Of a stretch of DNA of 64,000 nucleotides, positions 40,989 through 51,747 are shown piece after piece (position 1 is the stretch's first letter; each line of letters starts with the position of its first letter). The stretch is from the NCBI GenBank assembly GCA_965644295.1, contig CBFFRP010000232.1:45035-109034 (forward strand), written 5' to 3'. This DNA comes from Paraphysomonas bandaiensis. Taxonomy: Eukaryota; Protista; Chrysophyceae. The notes beneath the pieces are model-generated. The model worked only from the letters and a program-made list of their open reading frames with translations. It was not told where the DNA came from and ran no database searches. The position numbers and the translations under genes are program-made.

Positions 40989-41813
40989 TCACTGAAGTTT
41001 TCTCGCGTTGAACCTTTCAAAAGACTTCTTGACTATTATACCAAACCAATAGAGCTGCATCGCAAGAATAGGGACAAAAACGCCAGTTATAATCATTCCA
41101 AATATCTGGGTGTCCCGATTAGAACTTCCAAGAACCATCATTTGAACTACTTCATACATCAAGTAGACCAAGTTCAGTACTCGAATAAGAAAAAACACAA
41201 TTACAAAAGCTATTTCAAAGATTGGGACAAATATAGACTTCTCGTTACCAGTGTTTCGTAATATATAAGATATAGTAAAACAAATAGATGTCGATTCCAT
41301 GATCAGCACTCTTGAGCAAAATGGAGCTACATCGACAGGTAGAAGAGGGACAATTACAAAAAGGCATAGGCCTAGCATATGGTGTATAATGTACTCATAA
41401 CGGCCCTGTAAAGCCTCTGGAATTGCATAAAAGAAAATGTCAGCGGCCAGATAACCAAAACTAAATGGTGCAGCTTCACAATGAAGCAGCATCGCGCTTC
41501 CTTCGTTCAAGACCGATTCGTTGTAAGTGGAAAAGAAAGGTCCTATAGCACTTGTCGCATTAGCTGTCAAGAATATCATACGATAGACTGCCTGTGGTAC
41601 AACGACCACATGATGAACAAATGAACATATGTAAGAAATGAAATCTGCTTTCTTCTTATCAGGAAATTTATTGTAATACTTTGGAAGAAGTTTCGTCATA
41701 GCAAAAGGCATTAAGTAAAACATGGATGAAAATAAGATCACCCAAAACAAACTATCTGATAGGAAATAAGGAAATAGCTCATTATAAACGGGAGAATCAT
41801 GTGAGATTGCCAT
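40989..41813 (-). CDS. TLC (TRAM-LAG1-CLN8) domain membrane protein, TMEM56/TLCD-like
   Basis: SFVHH, FSFGYLAAD, YIIHH, LIMESTS, FFLIRV, MQLYWF. Start assumed at MAISH (41813); the ORF extends upstream to 41924. Confidence 0.88.
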   Translation of the reverse strand: MAISHDSPVYNELFPYFLSDSLFWVILFSSMFYLMPFAMTKLLPKYYNKFPDKKKADFISYICSFVHHVVVVPQAVYRMIFLTANATSAIGPFFSTYNESVLNEGSAMLLHCEAAPFSFGYLAADIFFYAIPEALQGRYEYIIHHMLGLCLFVIVPLLPVDVAPFCSRVLIMESTSICFTISYILRNTGNEKSIFVPIFEIAFVIVFFLIRVLNLVYLMYEVVQMMVLGSSNRDTQIFGMIITGVFVPILAMQLYWFGIIVKKSFERFNARKLQ

Positions 41814-41974
41814 GATTCCCTGTTGTAAATGTACTAACTCCTTATTAACTCGACGGTTAAGTTTAATATGCAAGTGACAGCAATGCTGTGCTAGCTTGCA
41901 AATCCCGTGACTGTTACTTTGCACAGCTTACACCGTCACCATGAACCATACACACATACCCACTGCTGTACTGA

Positions 41975-42042: not shown

Positions 42043-42378
42043 GAGGGTGGGCTGTACATGAGGGTGGGTGTCTTATATCGGGAAAAGGGCATTTTTCTCA
42101 TTACAACACACACAGTTTTACAGCACTATATTCTGTAAATGTCAGGGGGTAAAAAGAGGGGGTAAATTTTTTATAAATACGTAAAAAAAAGTATATGTAG
42201 GAATGGTATAGCGTGTGTATGTATAGCATCTACTAGCAGTATCTTTCACAGCCACACGGAGTGTCATAGAGAACAGTCTCTATATGTATGTATATATATG
42301 TATGTATGTATCATTAGTAAGAACACTCTACTAGCATATCATAATATTTGATAGTGATATAAACTACTAAGAAGTGAT

Positions 42379-45232
42379 ATGAATAGACTCAGTTATGCAT
42401 CACCACTACTCATTCTCACTCTATTATCAATCATATCAACAACATATAGCAGTAGCATGCAGTGCTCTGACTATAACTGTTGTGATATTAATAAAGACAA
42501 TGGATGCATGTTATCTACCTTACTAGACAATGCAACAACCCTCATATTCCCTGGAGGGGATACACGATGTATTCTGGTAGGATAATACCGCATAAGTAAC
42601 TGTACTCAGTAATATGGTGTTTATTGCAGTCATCTTCCACTCCATATGCATTTGAAGTACATAAAGGAAGTAAAGAAAAGATTCTTTTCTATTTTCAAGG
42701 TGGGGGAAGTTGTTGGGACGAGGAATCTACTCAAAACAGTGGGTCTGATGTGAAGAACACTAGATGCAGGACAGATGCTGTTCCATGGCCTGTTTATGGC
42801 GTTTTTGATCGCAGCGATCCTCGAAACGCATTTGCAGAATACACTATCGTAAATGTACTTTACTGTTCTGGGGACAACCATGCAGGTAATGTTCAGCGTG
42901 AATACTTAGACAATGATGGTGGAGAGGTGATTCAAAGAGGGATTGCTAATGTGGAGGCCGTGCTGACATGGGTGCAGAATCAACAGAGCTCTGGGGAACT
43001 TTCCAAGAAACTATCAGATTTAGTTGTGATGGGATGTTCTGCTGGATCAATTGCCTCCCAAGTATGGGGCAATGAAGTTGTGAAGCGACTGAACTACCCT
43101 CAGCGAGCTGCTATAGTTCTTGATAGCTACTTGGGACTATTTCCTGCTGATATTCAGGGCCCACTAATTCGAGAGTTTGGTATGTGTGACCTCAGTTTCC
43201 TCAGCGATGAGTTTCGGAGTATTTGTGAAGCCGGAAACGCGACCCTTATGAATCATACATTTAATGCAATGGCTGCCTCTCCTCATGTTCCCTACCTATT
43301 CATCCACTCTGCTTACGATCGAGTTCAGATTAAGTACTACAATTATGTGGCGGAGTCTTACGGTTATGATAATGGGTTTGGTTCTGATGGTTTTGAAGCT
43401 GCCTCTCAAGCAGTCTTTGCAGAGTATAACACTCTGTCTAACTTTCTTGTGTACTATATCAATAGCAACCAACATTGCTACACGCCTACACCGTACCTGT
43501 TCTTTGCAAATACTGACGGTATTAGCGGGTACGAAACAGATGATGCGAATGACGATGGCACTGATGATTCTGTCGGTGGTAACGTGGACGATGATAGTGT
43601 TATGGCAGTTGATATCACAGAGGAAACTCTCAACAAATGGGTGTCGCGTCTCCCTCTCTGGGCTGGTCAGGATATTTACTCTCAATGTGCCGAAGATATG
43701 TGCTCTGAAGATGTAATTCCGAAGAGGTATATTCAGTATGAAGTGTCTAGTGACAGTGGAAATCAAGGAGAAGGTTACGTCAAACAATCAGAGTATAGTC
43801 CATCCCGTTTAGTGCGGAATATGCACCAAGTTCCCCATCTCAATTCAGACTTCGAAACTGTGGACAGCACGTTCAATATCACTCATAACATCGGGTATTC
43901 AGAATACACTGCTTCTCTTGTGACTGTGCCTGTTCTAGTGTACGTGATAGGGATATTCGCTGTTTTGGTGTTTTTGTTTGCATTATTGATTCGGTCTATG
44001 AGCAGAGGAGTGAAGTACAGCAAGACGTCGAGCTCTGAGAGAGGTGACCTAGAATCCAGGCCGTTGGATATGAAAACCGTGAAATACACTGACATGGCTC
44101 CTCCAATAGAACTTGTGCAGGCATTCTTGGGGTGCCTTTTCGTTGCGTGCTTTCTCAATTTTTTTTTGTTCATGGGCAACGTGGAGGTCTCTCGTGGTAC
44201 GGATAAGGGTGATGCAGCTCTGTACCATTTACAGTATTCCTTTGAAGACCTCATGCACTATAGCGATAGTCTGCAAGTTCAAGGAGCGAACTTGACGGAT
44301 CAACTGACCATCGCATCAGAAGATGGATGCGAGGAAGCAGATGATGTGCTGGTTTACATGGACTCGTACGATGAATATATTCAGGAATTTGACAATGCCG
44401 TATCGCCTGTAGAGCCGAAGGTAGCTCGAGGAAGAAGAAATGTGAATAACTACGCAGTTGAAAAAAAGAACGGCTTCGTGTTCACAGTTTTCACCGTTTC
44501 CACACTTTGCATTATGTCCTTGTGGTTGTCGTCGCATCTGAGAAGTGTATGTGGCCTAAAATTTTCAATTGGTTTGGCGACATTTGTGGTACTCCTGAGT
44601 TTAATATTTTGCACTCTTTATATGATATTTCTGGTAGGCCCACTATCCTACACTGATTATAATGTCTTACTTGTAATTAGATTGCTCTGGCGGATTTTTG
44701 TATGGATCCAACAACCTATGTGCTATCTATGATAAAGCAGGGGAGCACGCAAGAAACAGTGAAGTACTATGCCACCTGCTCTGGAGTCAGTCCTGCATCC
44801 GAGTACCTATATGGAGCGGAATATACCACAAATGTCATGGAATATTTTGTGGGGACATTAGCTTCAGATTACTGTGTTGATAATACTGGAGTGTTAGGTG
44901 CTCTTTCCAGTGTTCGTTACATATCATCCGATATCAACGCTGTCCAGAATATCGCTGACTGCGCGCCATACAAGGAATACTGGGAACGTTTCTTTCACGA
45001 GGGAGCTTGCTCGAATATTTTTGAGGGAATGTATATAATTTGGATATCGCAAACGTTGGCAGCTCTCTTTTTATTTGCTGCTGCCGTCCTAGCAAGTGTT
45101 ATATATCCGTATTACGCTAGTTATCATAAGCAAGTAGAAACACAACTACTAATGGATTCATCACACGACTCCTTATCGTCCACAGAATCTTCTACTAATG
45201 TAGTCATCGAGATGAACAGGAGATCGCTATAG
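42379..45232 (+). CDS. Signal peptide + pectinacetylesterase/Notum-like hydrolase fused to a Tweety-family membrane domain, 3 exons
   Basis: Hydrolase motifs FYFQGGGSCWD, YCSGDNHAG, GCSAGS, QHCY. Tweety-like YSPSRLVRNMHQVPHLNSDFETVDSTF..EYTASL, GNVEVSRG, LADFCMDP, YYATC, DC..GAC..FEG. Introns 42577-42629 and 44634-44680. Confidence 0.85.
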
Positions 45233-46845
45233 AATTCGTGCAGTAACTTATTCTTTGGTTTGCATCTAAAAGGTGATTTAGAATCTATTCTTACTTGGTA
45301 TTTTGTCGTTCCGCTCTTATGATGTAAATTATTGGTCAGAGCTAATAAATTGAATATAAGATAATGATTTATGTTACAACTTACTTGTGATTTACTTGTT
45401 CTCAAATTGACGCATAGCGCATAGGTATACATCTAAATGTTACTGACGTTGATATTAGTATGTAATTTTTGTACTCTGACCGTTAAACTCTACAATCAGT
45501 ATGACACCATAAACCATATATAGATATCTAGCCTACTCTGTGCTTCACTTCCTACTACACATCATATTTTGAGCTTGAAAATACAATCTCTGTTTGCTAC
45601 ACAACTTTGCTTGGTGCTATGTGATCTACAATGTGCACCGTATGCGCGTTGTGTACTATATACGAAAGTGTTAATATACACACAACACCATAAAAGAAAT
45701 TGCTTGCTCACTGCGTTTTCTTCGAGTGATATAGCGAAATTGGTTGCACCTTGGCGCTTGCTCTGTGTTGAGTTCTGGTATATGAGGGCGATTGAAAGCT
45801 GTAGTTATAAGGTATTTAAATTACAGTAGTAGACAGTTGTACTCTTATTAATTGCACTGTGAGCATGATTGACGATAAGTATAATATAGTATATTAAAAC
45901 GGAAATAGTGATGATGCAAGTTATAGTGACGAAGTAAGTTCGTACGAGAAATGAGTGGTAGCAGAGAGACAACATGAAATTGGTGAATGATAAGAGATTA
46001 TTTGTGATTATAACTTTTATAATTCTCAGCATTATAATTTATTAATACTTCTTATAATATAATGTCGAACTTTGATACGGTGTGTAGTGACAGACAAGCC
46101 ACTTTCGTAGCACCAAATAGTAGGATATCAGAGTTAAGCACTAGTTATTAGTTTAGATGTAATGCTTAATTAGTTCTGACTCTTTAACATTAAACACCTA
46201 TTGCAAAAGATAAGACATTCACTAATATTCTACTCTATCTTATTGACTATTGGTCATTTTTACAATTCAGATCGTTAAGAGAAGTTTATTGTAATCAAAC
46301 TAGATAGACTTCTATATTAAATTGCATACACAATTGTGTGTGTTGTCATGTAAAAACATGTCAACAACATGATAAATCATTTCGTTCATATCAGATGTCA
46401 GCCACTGCTCAACCTCCGTATCTTGAATCGTCATGATACAATACTTCATTTTCACAGTTATAGCTATATAGCATATTTGACAACGTATTACTGTTTTTCA
46501 CATTGTATTTAACGTGTTCTACAGCACTATCTTAGAGAACCATACGTATTCCAACATATCTATCTACCTATTACGTATTACACATGATTTTGTGTATAGT
46601 ATATACTGATTTCGCCGTCGTTAAGTGTGTTGTCTTCAATAAACTGTTAATAGCTCAACTCCTCTTACAATAGCCAACGTAAAGACGACAACAAGCTAAA
46701 CCAAAACAATTTCAAAATAAATTATAATATTTATTCTCTATAGATACACGATAAGACATTAACATTAAGTAACACGGTCAATTACATATCAAGACATAGA
46801 AACCATCGTGAGTGGTTACGCTACATATATTGCTAACGGCCGCTT

Positions 46846-48945: not shown

Positions 48946-51747
48946 ATGAGTTTTCTCGGTATGCGTAATAACAGGGACTCATGGGTCCATGTAAGTATAT
49001 ATATACATCACTACACATAGAATATAACTTAATTACAGAGAGCATCTGCTTCAAATGGTTTCTCTAATGGACATCGATTACAGAGTGCTCAGAGTGGTAA
49101 TGAGACACAGCGTATCACACAACAAGATACGCAACTCGATGAAGTTAATCGAGCCATGTCCAACATGACATACTCAAGACCCTCATCATCTAATTTATCA
49201 TCTCGTCCTAATTCAGCTTCAAATAAACAGTCAACGTCACAGTTTAATAGATATAAAGCTGCTGATTCTATGAGACGAGATACGACAGAGGTACCATCTC
49301 CTCAGAAACAAAGAGACACTAAAGAAACTCATCAAAAAGCTCGAGTCCCGAAGTTTGTTGAAACAGAGAAACAAGTATTGAGGTTTTATTGCCATTTCTT
49401 TGAAAAGGATGTTCCCGAACTTGGTCAGAGACGTCAAAAAGTTGCATCGTCTTCAACTCCTCGTTTCTTTACACTGCGTATATACGTGGAAGACAACACT
49501 TTTGAAATTAGTGAAGAGCGGTGTCAAAATTCCGGTACTTTTATATATGATACGTAAGCGTAATTTAATGGTGTACTAGGAATTCAAGGTGGTGCGTTTT
49601 ACCGGCGTGGTCCTCTCAAGAAGGGAAGTCAGTCGTTCGAGCCGTCTGATTTCAGTGTCGGCTCGTCTTTTTCTGCGCTCGGACAGGAATTTTTTATCAC
49701 AGATTGCGATGAATTCACCCGAGAGTACTACAGGTATGTAGTGGAGGTGGCATTCTAAACTGTATTGTACTCATATGACCATAAATAGGCGCCATCTGGG
49801 AATCGTGCAGGCCGCAGCAGAGCCCCGTCCGGAGCCCGTAGATGTATCAGCCAGTGCCCCACGTAGTGATGTCCCACGCCCAGCGACTGGAAAAGCGAAT
49901 ACATCTCGCAGTGCCGAATACGCTGCCAAGAAGGAGCTACAGGACAAGACAATGCGATTCCTCCGTGGTGATACCAGGGTGCTTCGATTCAAGTGTATAG
50001 AACTCACTTCTGGGCGGTCTCAGGGCACCATATCTGGGCTCTCTTCTGGTGTTACTGAGTATTGTTTACTGTTTTATCTCGCTGACTCATGTGGCGAATT
50101 ACGGATGGCTAGGACCAGTCGAATTTCATCAGATGATCCCAGTGTAATCCTGAAAAAGTGTCGAATTCCGAAGAACTGGAGAGACAGATCCTCAGGGCAT
50201 GCGAGAGATGGAGACTACTATGGACCAGAAGATCTGTTGTGTGGAAGCACAATAGATTGTTTTGGTCGGAAGATTTTAATTACCGGGTGCGACGAGGCTA
50301 CTCGAAAGTTTTACGCTGAGAATGGTGTGAATCAGGTAGAGGTGGAGGTTGAGCGCCCAATGGAGAAGGGGCAGACGAAACAGGCGAAAATATCGGCTAA
50401 CGAAGGCACAGGACTTAACATAGGGAATGAGGGCATTCGCTCAAAGGCCCATAGTCAGAGTCGCGCAATGTCGGCCCCTGAACACACGGAGGTACTGCGG
50501 TGTAAGTGTCAATTTGCTGGTTCAAGGGTTGCCGCACGAGATGCGGAGAGACGATTTGTTGTGTCGTTTTACCTCGAGGACAATACAATGGCTGTGTTCG
50601 AGGAGCAGGGACGAAATATGGGAGCCCCAGGTGGAAGTTTTCTCAAGCGAGATATATATTCAAATGAGATGCCTTATGACACCCGAAGTCCCCGCCGATT
50701 TTTGTCATCAGATTTGTTTCTGGGTAATACTTTCCGCATCAATGGCTATGAAATGCGAGTTACCGAAATGGATGATATGAGTGTGAACTTTTGTAAAGAG
50801 TATCCTGAAGACTACCCTTTTTTTGACATATATGCGATCATACAAAAACTAATGAGAAAGGTAGTATAATCTTAGTGCTGGTTAATTAACGGGTTCTAAT
50901 GTAAATTATGTGTATTCTGCAGATGCTGTCTTTAGGGATTGATGTGAGAGACGCTATAATGAATGAATACGATGTAGAAGGGAAGTCGTGGTTGACAGAG
51001 GATCAGTTTATGATATGCATAGATGATCTCGGAATTAGTAGAGAGCTCAATGAACAGGAACTTGTGACTTTACTGCAGTCGTTTTCTCTAGAGGTTGCTG
51101 CGAAAGGTTCACGTGAGAGGAGATCGCAACTGGAAGTTAAGTACCTCTACCACGAGATGTGCGACCTATTCTCGCATTCATATTGTGTGATGGCTGCGGG
51201 ATCGGCGTCCAAGAAACCATCGGAAAATCCGCTGGATAGACTGCTTGATGATATCCGCGCGAGAAAAACGCCATGGAGGAGGTACGTGTTGCCAGAGTCT
51301 GTATGTATTGTAGCTAATGTTTTTTGTGCTGTGCAGTGTGTTAAGGGAAAATGATAAATCGATCACAACATTCATAAGCCTTTCTGACCTCGTTACATGC
51401 TTCTCTGACAACGGTTATCGGCTCACGATGCCAAATCGCGGTCTCATTGTTGAGAACTACGCCCTGACGGATGCAGAGGCAGCTCCTATTTTGAGAGTAG
51501 GGTGTCAAACTTATTGTGTAGTTTTGTGCTCATTTCATGTGCAGATGTTGGAACAAGTTACAGGAAAAAGTATCGTTCAACAGCCACAACGTGGAAGGTA
51601 AGCTGGACAGTTGTTAGAATGTTTATAATGAAGTGTATCAGAGGGGTACGTGGACGGCGACAAGATGACGAGTATGATGGCGAGAGAATTATAATAGATT
51701 TTCATACCTTCTGCAACGACATATACATTTGTGACTGGGTAAAATGA
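48946..51747 (+). CDS. DM10-domain EFHC/Rib72-like axonemal protein with C-terminal EF-hand-like region, multi-exon
   Basis: Three DM10-like units: KQVLRFYCHF..IYVEDNTFEISE..NSG, VLRFKC..FYLADS..TGCDEATRKFY, RRFVVSFYLEDNTMAVFE..GGSFLKR. Several short introns. Confidence 0.82.

Follow-up and report, generated by a model that had tools for sequence, protein, structure and literature searches.

A pectin acetylesterase/Notum-type hydrolase and a Tweety membrane domain encoded as one protein in the chrysophyte Paraphysomonas bandaiensis

A 64,000-nucleotide stretch of the genome assembly of Paraphysomonas bandaiensis (GenBank GCA_965644295.1, contig CBFFRP010000232.1, positions 45,035 to 109,034 of the forward strand; hereafter the window, in which all unprefixed positions below are counted) contains a gene for one 917-residue membrane protein, in which an alpha/beta hydrolase of the pectin acetylesterase (PAE)/Notum type is followed by a domain of the Tweety family. 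The gene is transcribed as one mRNA, and the esterase–Tweety fusion is real. The combination is new; each domain belongs to a known family, so this is not a new kind of protein. In the literature, no paper was found that pairs Tweety with pectin acetylesterase, and those that name both Tweety and Notum deal, by title and abstract, with unrelated topics. Likewise, no named NCBI, UniRef, MMETSP or EukProt protein has both domains among the candidates of 367–1169 residues, InterPro lying outside the scope of this search. The initial annotation of the window, made from the letters alone, had described the fusion as unfamiliar from characterised proteins, and within that scope it still is.

Gene structure and transcript

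The junction between the two domains lies within a 702-codon open frame on the + strand (42624–44732) that is unbroken across it. Removal of two predicted introns, both with canonical GT..AG borders, gives a coding sequence (CDS) of 2,754 nt (42379–42576, 42630–44633 and 44681–45232) that is translated into 917 amino acids with its sole stop at the end. A single 2,917-nt contig from run X1 aligns to 42326–42575, 42629–44632 and 44680–45342; it lacks both introns exactly as predicted and spans both domains, and it delimits an assembled transcript of 42326–45342 (+ strand) with a 5' untranslated region (UTR), the CDS and a 3' UTR. At the 5' end of this transcript, from 42326 on, no ATG precedes the one at 42379, which is the first. 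The joint of intron 2 is also present in runs X4 and X5 (marine metatranscriptome), in each of which one contig bridges the domain junction (43674–44394 and 43693–43966 respectively), and the DNA-like run X12 is unspliced; the runs containing the gene include marine metatranscriptomes. The coordinates and exon borders proposed initially were right, in that the splice joints match the X1 transcript, and the claim that the esterase–Tweety junction falls within one exon now extends to one mRNA (X1, X4 and X5 contigs). Examination of RNA across the junction had been suggested as a check: transcript contigs cross it, and separate esterase and Tweety mRNAs were not seen.

The gene has three coding exons, all on the + strand. 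Exon 1 (CDS 42379–42576, aa 1–66), placed by splice sites, transcript and alignment, encodes the signal peptide (about aa 1–26), the first esterase strands and the conserved Cys35, Cys43 and Cys64, and it is because of these cysteines that exon 1 is counted as part of the esterase domain. Intron 1 (42577–42629, 53 nt) is absent from the X1 contig and retained in X12. Exon 2 (42630–44633, aa 67–734), a single open frame, carries the bulk of the esterase, the linker and the Tweety domain from its N-terminus to most of the fourth transmembrane (TM) segment; relatives P0001–P0010 cover 94–99% of it, with the exception of P0006 (68%). Intron 2 (44634–44680, 47 nt) falls inside TM4 and is skipped in the X1, X4 and X5 contigs. 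Exon 3 (44681–45232, aa 735–917 and the stop) encodes the end of TM4, a second extracellular part with invariant cysteines, TM5 (45029–45112) and a cytosolic tail, as judged from Pfam family PF04906 and from the comparison of profile A3 with TTYH1 described below.

The two domains and their predicted orientation

The PAE/Notum-type ectodomain (42457–43724, + strand, aa 27–431, split by intron 1) is recognised by Pfam, by an AF2 model, by Foldseek and by a family profile. Pfam PAE (PF03283) scores 52.9 bits against a gathering cut-off of 26.6 (E 4e-14, profile positions 32–258), and the cut-off is also passed by every tested fusion relative that contains the domain. In an alignment with 118 relatives, the GGG of the oxyanion loop (aa 90–92), Ser203, Asp296, Gln299, His348 and many cysteines are invariant or nearly so (115–119 sequences, all fusions included). 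The nucleophile Ser203 (codon 43038–43040, + strand), which lies in a GCSAG motif at aa 201–205, is invariant in 118/118 sequences and is found also in alignment A4; Asp296 (43317–43319, + strand; S..D..Q motif) and His348 (43473–43475, + strand; HC motif) are both invariant in 119/119. The same three motifs, the Ser of GxSxG, the Asp of ..D..Q and the His of HC, define the plant PAEs and Notum (PMC5465549). By its residues the esterase is catalytically intact, with a Ser-Asp-His triad and an oxyanion loop.

The AF2 model of the exon-2 part of the esterase has a predicted local distance difference test score (pLDDT) of 91.9 and a predicted template modelling score (pTM) of 0.92. When this model was compared with the PDB by Foldseek, the best 50 matches were all Notum (E about 1e-10, probability 1.00, TM-score 0.47–0.59, identity 14–16%), and a profile of the esterase clade reached Notum at E 2e-5, with the oxyanion loop and the nucleophile elbow aligned. 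Notum (PDB 4uyw and many others) is the sole solved family matched, by fold and by profile. The family profile was needed for this, as phmmer of the esterase part alone against PDB sequences gave no match; a protein-atlas search with exon 2 gave no usable match. The Notum/PAE-like hydrolase with its GGG loop, GCSAG nucleophile and C-terminal His, as first read from the sequence, is therefore recovered by a Pfam score above the cut-off, by invariant motifs and by a Notum-like fold, the Pfam profile being one of the checks that had been proposed.

Like Notum, the window esterase has the oxyanion loop, the GxSxG elbow and the D..Q and HC motifs, and it is predicted to share the extracellular location, but the two differ in sequence (14–16% identity) and only partly superpose (TM-score about 0.5). 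Notum, a palmitoleoyl-protein carboxylesterase that strips palmitoleoyl from Wnt (PMC5465549), is soluble and held at the cell surface by glypican, whereas the window esterase is fused to a membrane protein. The plant pectin acetylesterases (CE13, for example AtPAE8) belong to the same Pfam family and share the GCSxG, ..yDxxQ and HC motifs, the many cysteines and entry into the secretory pathway, but are soluble wall enzymes that act on pectin. Pectin is not known to be made by a scale-bearing colourless chrysophyte. Compared with the plant enzymes, the fusion clade branches on a long stem from among the PAE-only enzymes of protists, and it has an insert of its own after the catalytic His.

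This insert is contained in the segment that runs from the catalytic His to the conserved Trp403 (43476–43637, + strand), whose length is 54 residues in the window protein and 48–76 across the fusion clade; the median for PAE-only relatives is 30. With 14 Asp/Glu among its 54 residues, the segment is acidic in the window protein, and the model predicts disorder there (pLDDT 58–72). The insert is strongly acidic in two of the three subclades of the fusion clade and Ala/Thr-rich or neutral in the third. The esterase domain ends with a dibasic Lys-Arg (aa 431–432). Alignments place a linker of about 25 residues (aa 432–456; 43725–43799, + strand) between the last conserved esterase Cys/PK motif and the N-terminal motif of the Tweety domain; it is short and polar, and its sequence is not conserved. 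Both the acidic insert and the short linker had been picked out in the initial annotation, and the former is borne out by its length relative to the PAE-only median.

The first part of the Tweety domain (43800–44633, + strand, aa 457–734) comprises the N-terminal helix motif, TM1 (43911–43991), a cytosolic loop, TM2 (44106–44174), the first extracellular helices, TM3 (44472–44537) and the start of TM4 (44568–44633); with TM5, the spliced protein has five hydrophobic segments. Scored separately against PF04906, the two exon pieces of the window give co-linear matches of 20.0 bits (profile 2–62, E 3e-4) and 14.1 bits (266–399, E 0.019), the gathering cut-off being 31.8; the fusion relatives score 19–29.5 bits, and strong precomputed PF04906 matches lie on downstream exons of relatives L002 and L005. 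As the exon-piece scores of the window are weak, homology was examined by family profiles against the PDB and against protein clusters, and by structure. A profile of the N-terminal half of the Tweety domain (A1, 292 positions) had TTYH2 as its best PDB match (E 8e-6), from the N-terminus to TM4 and with VDSTF shared, and profile A3 had TTYH1 as its best (E 4e-7), from TM4 to TM5 and with the cysteines of the DFC, YYxxC, DC-type and GxC motifs aligned. Among 1.84 billion representative proteins, the fusion Tweety profile matched 491 clusters at E ≤1e-3, mostly standalone proteins in which the match starts at residue 2–30. Standalone Tweety-like proteins were matched at E 1e-53 to 1e-23, and eight of the nine complete ones tested pass the PF04906 cut-off (E 1e-8 to 1e-25). 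The cysteines of the four motifs are invariant wherever the region is present, in fusion and standalone proteins alike (alignment A7).

The structure model was built on relative P0012 (residues 329–899), the sole complete fusion member available, and not on the window's own spliced protein. This AF2 model has a mean pLDDT of 78.5, with a core above 90. Its best 11 Foldseek matches are all TTYH1–3 (E 3e-9 to 3e-5), the next being at E 0.24, and VIA-align superposes it on TTYH1/2/3 with Z 26–28 and a root-mean-square deviation of 3.6–4.4 Å over 344–383 of about 395 residues, the first unrelated helical bundle following at Z 12.3. As in TTYH (PMC8361169), TM2, TM3 and TM5 of the model continue as helices of about 67–69 residues. 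BLAST identity between P0012 and the window protein is 44% from the esterase to TM1 and drops to 24% in the remainder of the Tweety half; the window protein aligns with P0012 over the whole Tweety domain and keeps every conserved Cys. Judged by profiles and by this modelled relative, the C-terminal half is a true and complete Tweety domain with the TTYH fold. Whether this half would match Tweety by profile or structure had been named as a decisive check, and TTYH proteins came first by profile as well as in the P0012 comparison; the features listed at the outset, that is a Tweety-like N-terminus with VDSTF, five TM segments and the DFC, YYxxC, DC and GxC cysteines, are all found, with the N-terminus aligning to that of TTYH2 and the cysteines to those of TTYH1.

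P0012 was also considered as a proof of the fusion from a single open reading frame (ORF) and was rejected for that purpose, as its frame runs on through a 63-nt GT..AG intron that keeps the reading frame and sits where the window gene has intron 2. Residues 679–699 are therefore not protein, and they appear as a low-confidence loop in the model. The database gives P0012 (L003:2624-5323) as an 899-residue 'single ORF'; prokaryote-style gene calls on protist contigs can hide introns.

With human TTYH1–3 (PDB 7p5j, 7p54/7rtt and 7p5c; PF04906) the domain has in common five TM segments and, as predicted here, an N-terminus outside and a C-terminus inside, together with long extracellular helices from TM2, TM3 and TM5, the N-terminal helix motif (VDSTF as in TTYH2) and conserved extracellular cysteines flanking a helical hairpin, and the model of P0012 covers about 95% of the solved chain. 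In the TTYHs the conserved cysteines form disulfides that fix the E3–E4 hairpin (PMC8361169). The differences are an identity of only 14–18%, a longer TM1–TM2 loop and a short cytosolic tail (about 40 residues) in the window protein, and the N-terminus: animal TTYHs begin only a few residues ahead of the N-terminal helix, where the window protein has a 405-residue enzyme domain. Standalone protist Tweety proteins contain the same domain with the same invariant cysteines and are matched by the fusion profile at E values down to 1e-53, but the match begins 2–40 residues from their N-terminus, so that they are without an ectodomain, and they lie outside the fusion clade in the tree.

Several features of the protein agree on its likely orientation. 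A typical signal peptide stands at the N-terminus. The five N-x-S/T sequons all fall in parts predicted to be outside (three of them in the esterase, a fourth immediately ahead of TM1 and the fifth in the first extracellular segment), as do 20 of the 26 cysteines (14 in the esterase and six in the two extracellular segments), and in the predicted cytosolic loops Lys/Arg outnumber Asp/Glu (8 vs 5 in TM1–TM2 and 2 vs 0 in TM3–TM4). The N-terminus of TTYH is extracellular or luminal (PMC8361169), and this would put the esterase on the side of the Tweety ectodomain, about 25 residues from the N-terminal helix. We infer that the esterase and the Tweety N-terminus are outside or luminal and the C-terminus cytosolic, which is the arrangement that the signal peptide had first suggested and with which the distribution of sequons, cysteines and charges agrees.

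Relatives, origin and genomic setting

An architecture search over protein clusters found about 16 environmental fusion relatives. Thirteen clusters, from metagenomes and public runs, cover both domains with 37–53% identity to the window protein, and P0119, P0120 and P0209 are further fusion members or fragments; all are uncultured, and none has an informative name or a culture-derived source. The DNA 3' of six relatives contains the same last exon with the same cysteines, and the position of intron 2 in TM4 is common to L001, L004, L007 and L003, the relatives in which the intron could be read. Trees of both domains were made by a quick search without a mixture model. In the esterase tree, the 13 fusion members form one clade (Shimodaira–Hasegawa-like approximate likelihood ratio test, SH-aLRT, 100) on a long stem (0.77), nested among PAE-only proteins and with two Paramoeba transcriptome proteins among its sister sequences; in the Tweety tree, all 16 members are united in one clade (support 98) that excludes the standalone proteins. 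The same three subclades are present in both trees, and identity between subclades is only about 37%. A single clade with the same three subclades in both domains argues for one old fusion event followed by joint descent, and the simplest reading of the trees is that the fusion arose once and has persisted in three or more diverged subclades. Nearest to the esterase half stand about 100 PAE-only proteins of secreted type, which come from protists, phagotrophs among them. No other enzyme–Tweety fusion was present among the longer Tweety-profile matches and the matches with N-terminal extensions that were checked.

Three further observations concern these relatives. A divergently oriented JmjC/Cupin_8 gene stands just upstream of two fusion relatives of the same subclade (L003:591-2210 and L005:142-1632, - strand), a synteny that is absent from the window. 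The 90%-identity cluster of P0119 also lists 57-residue 'hypothetical proteins' of Agrobacterium and of a compost metagenome, the clustering having probably gone astray on a short stretch of low complexity. Longer proteins of other protists can also contain a PAE domain (P0114–P0117), among them one of 856 residues from Pirum gemmata (probably with a second, of 648), one of 1,112 residues and one with Kelch repeats; recruitment of the esterase into multi-domain proteins has therefore happened elsewhere too.

Paraphysomonas is a colourless, phagotrophic, bacterivorous marine chrysophyte. Its genome assembly (62.6 Mb, 669 contigs) contains this one esterase–Tweety fusion only, together with standalone versions of both halves. 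Four standalone Tweety-like loci were found (C239:21345-22866, C378:110417-111871, C380:33437-34475 and C410:250524-251739), of which that on C380 is 99% identical to P0169; across 475 residues it has this identity to a protein from the Paraphysomonas transcriptome MMETSP1103 (taxid 36769). About 10 PAE loci lie on C11 (12290-14484, - strand, apparently as two tandem copies) and on eight other contigs; PAE is an expanded esterase family in this phagotroph. No PF03283 match in the genome adjoins a match to PF01061, the family of ABCG-type transporters; the two come closest on contig C424, about 9 kb apart and on opposite strands, though a degenerate PAE domain may escape the profile.

The neighbours of the fusion gene in the window encode a leucine-rich repeat (LRR) protein, a TLC-domain protein, a PX-domain protein, a DM10 protein and a MIF4G/MA3 protein. 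The TLC-domain (TRAM/LAG1/CLN8, PF03798, E 2e-15) membrane protein gene is divergently oriented about 450 bp upstream (40989–41924, - strand) and belongs to a lipid-related family; gene adjacency in a eukaryote is weak evidence on function. The DM10-domain gene (PF06565, E 1e-31; 49775–50869, + strand) fits a flagellate host, as this domain is typical of flagellar proteins.

Possible roles of the fusion protein

The function of Tweety proteins has been debated for two decades, first as chloride channels and now as lipid-transfer catalysts (PMC8361169, PMC12328215). A hydrophobic cavity, which opens from the outer leaflet and contains lipid density, is found in human TTYHs (PMC8361169), and TTYH2 is endosomal, binds APOE particles through its luminal domain and accelerates the transfer of lipid between lipoprotein particles and membranes (PMC12328215). 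By analogy, we propose that the two halves of the window protein may cooperate on the external or luminal leaflet, in the plasma membrane, endosomes or food vacuoles of a bacterivorous flagellate. As human TTYH2 does, the Tweety domain would provide a groove that is hydrophobic and accessible from the leaflet, and the tethered esterase would remove ester-linked acyl or acetyl groups from a lipid or lipid-modified substrate held at the groove; alternatively, the esterase would free a hydrophobic product and the groove would pass it into the membrane. The pairing of an animal TTYH with a soluble partner would here be hard-wired as a TTYH with an enzyme. We regard such a coupling of deacylation to lipid hand-over or uptake, by the esterase together with the Tweety cavity, as plausible but would stop just short of calling it probable. 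In its favour, the fusion and, from the alignments, its catalytic residues are retained through deep divergence, and enzyme fusion is not a general habit of Tweety proteins as far as the checked sequences indicate.

A number of points weigh against this coupling. The characterised plant members of PF03283 deacetylate polysaccharide, not lipid (PMC5465549). The fold match to Notum is moderate, and a Notum-like acyl pocket in the protist enzyme is therefore hypothetical. A three-chain complex prediction, with the esterase and the Tweety domain as two exon pieces and without alignments, gave a score of 0.00 and no docking, an outcome that speaks neither way on binding. The structural match of the Tweety half comes from P0012, with its 24–44% identity and its 21-residue intron read-through, and not from the window protein. 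Co-localisation alone can also keep a fusion.

One alternative is that the protein is a membrane-anchored deacetylase of carbohydrate or small esters, acting on prey walls or on the cell's own surface coat, with the Tweety domain as an anchor, a dimerising scaffold or a part with a separate function. We consider this a serious possibility, if on balance rather improbable. It would be in keeping with the family (PF03283/CE13), whose characterised plant members are glycan acetylesterases, and with the secreted-type PAE-only protist proteins that are nearest to the esterase half; the 10 or so further PAE loci would fit a digestive enzyme family, and the inconclusive complex prediction gave no contact between the halves. 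However, a 460-residue, five-helix domain with all the Tweety hallmarks (N-terminal motif, long helices and four to five invariant cysteines) far exceeds the needs of an anchor, the long stem of the esterase clade and its own insert suggest a change of role after the fusion, and the halves have diverged together without ever being separated in the 16 known members.

Another possibility, which we think quite improbable, is that the protein is a precursor, cleaved within the linker, perhaps just behind the Lys-Arg at aa 431–432, to release a soluble secreted esterase and an ordinary Tweety protein, such that the fusion would serve co-expression only. The short, polar and unconserved linker, the dibasic site at the end of the esterase domain and the standalone versions of both halves in the same genome would all suit cleavage. 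Against this, the Pro-Lys before the site belongs to a conserved C-terminal motif of PAE-only proteins, so that the site is not specific to the fusion; there is no processing evidence, and a physical partnership explains the long co-divergence equally well. That the arrangement is an artefact or two genes (a read-through frame, an assembly chimera, a pseudogene or separate mRNAs) can hardly be entertained in view of the unbroken 702-codon frame, the spliced contig that spans all of it with two further runs bridging the junction, and the same arrangement, with catalytic residues and cysteines kept, in about 16 independent environmental relatives; nothing was found to support it, the sole caveat being that the contigs are compatible with an additional internal transcription start. 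Cleavage and artefact are both less likely than either coupled deacylation or an anchored deacetylase.

Coupled deacylation may also be extended into a 'Rosetta stone' reading, in which Tweety proteins generally partner luminal or extracellular ester hydrolases, the cavity lifting ester lipids or acyl chains out of or into the outer leaflet and presenting them to the enzyme, and in which the partnership has become covalent here for prey-derived lipids in food vacuoles. This generalisation is unlikely in our estimation. If true, it would tell what class of partner is still missing for animal TTYH1 and TTYH3.

Should the esterase turn out to be an ordinary deacetylase of glycans, what remains is no more than an unusual membrane anchor. 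As things stand, the fusion to a Notum-family esterase is independent evolutionary evidence for Tweety domains working beside ester-lipid or acyl chemistry at the external or luminal face of the membrane, and the window protein provides a single-polypeptide system for testing the Tweety–esterase idea and a natural handle on Tweety function. For protist biology, it suggests that an abundant bacterivore of the sea may have a membrane-bound device for digestion or lipid uptake.

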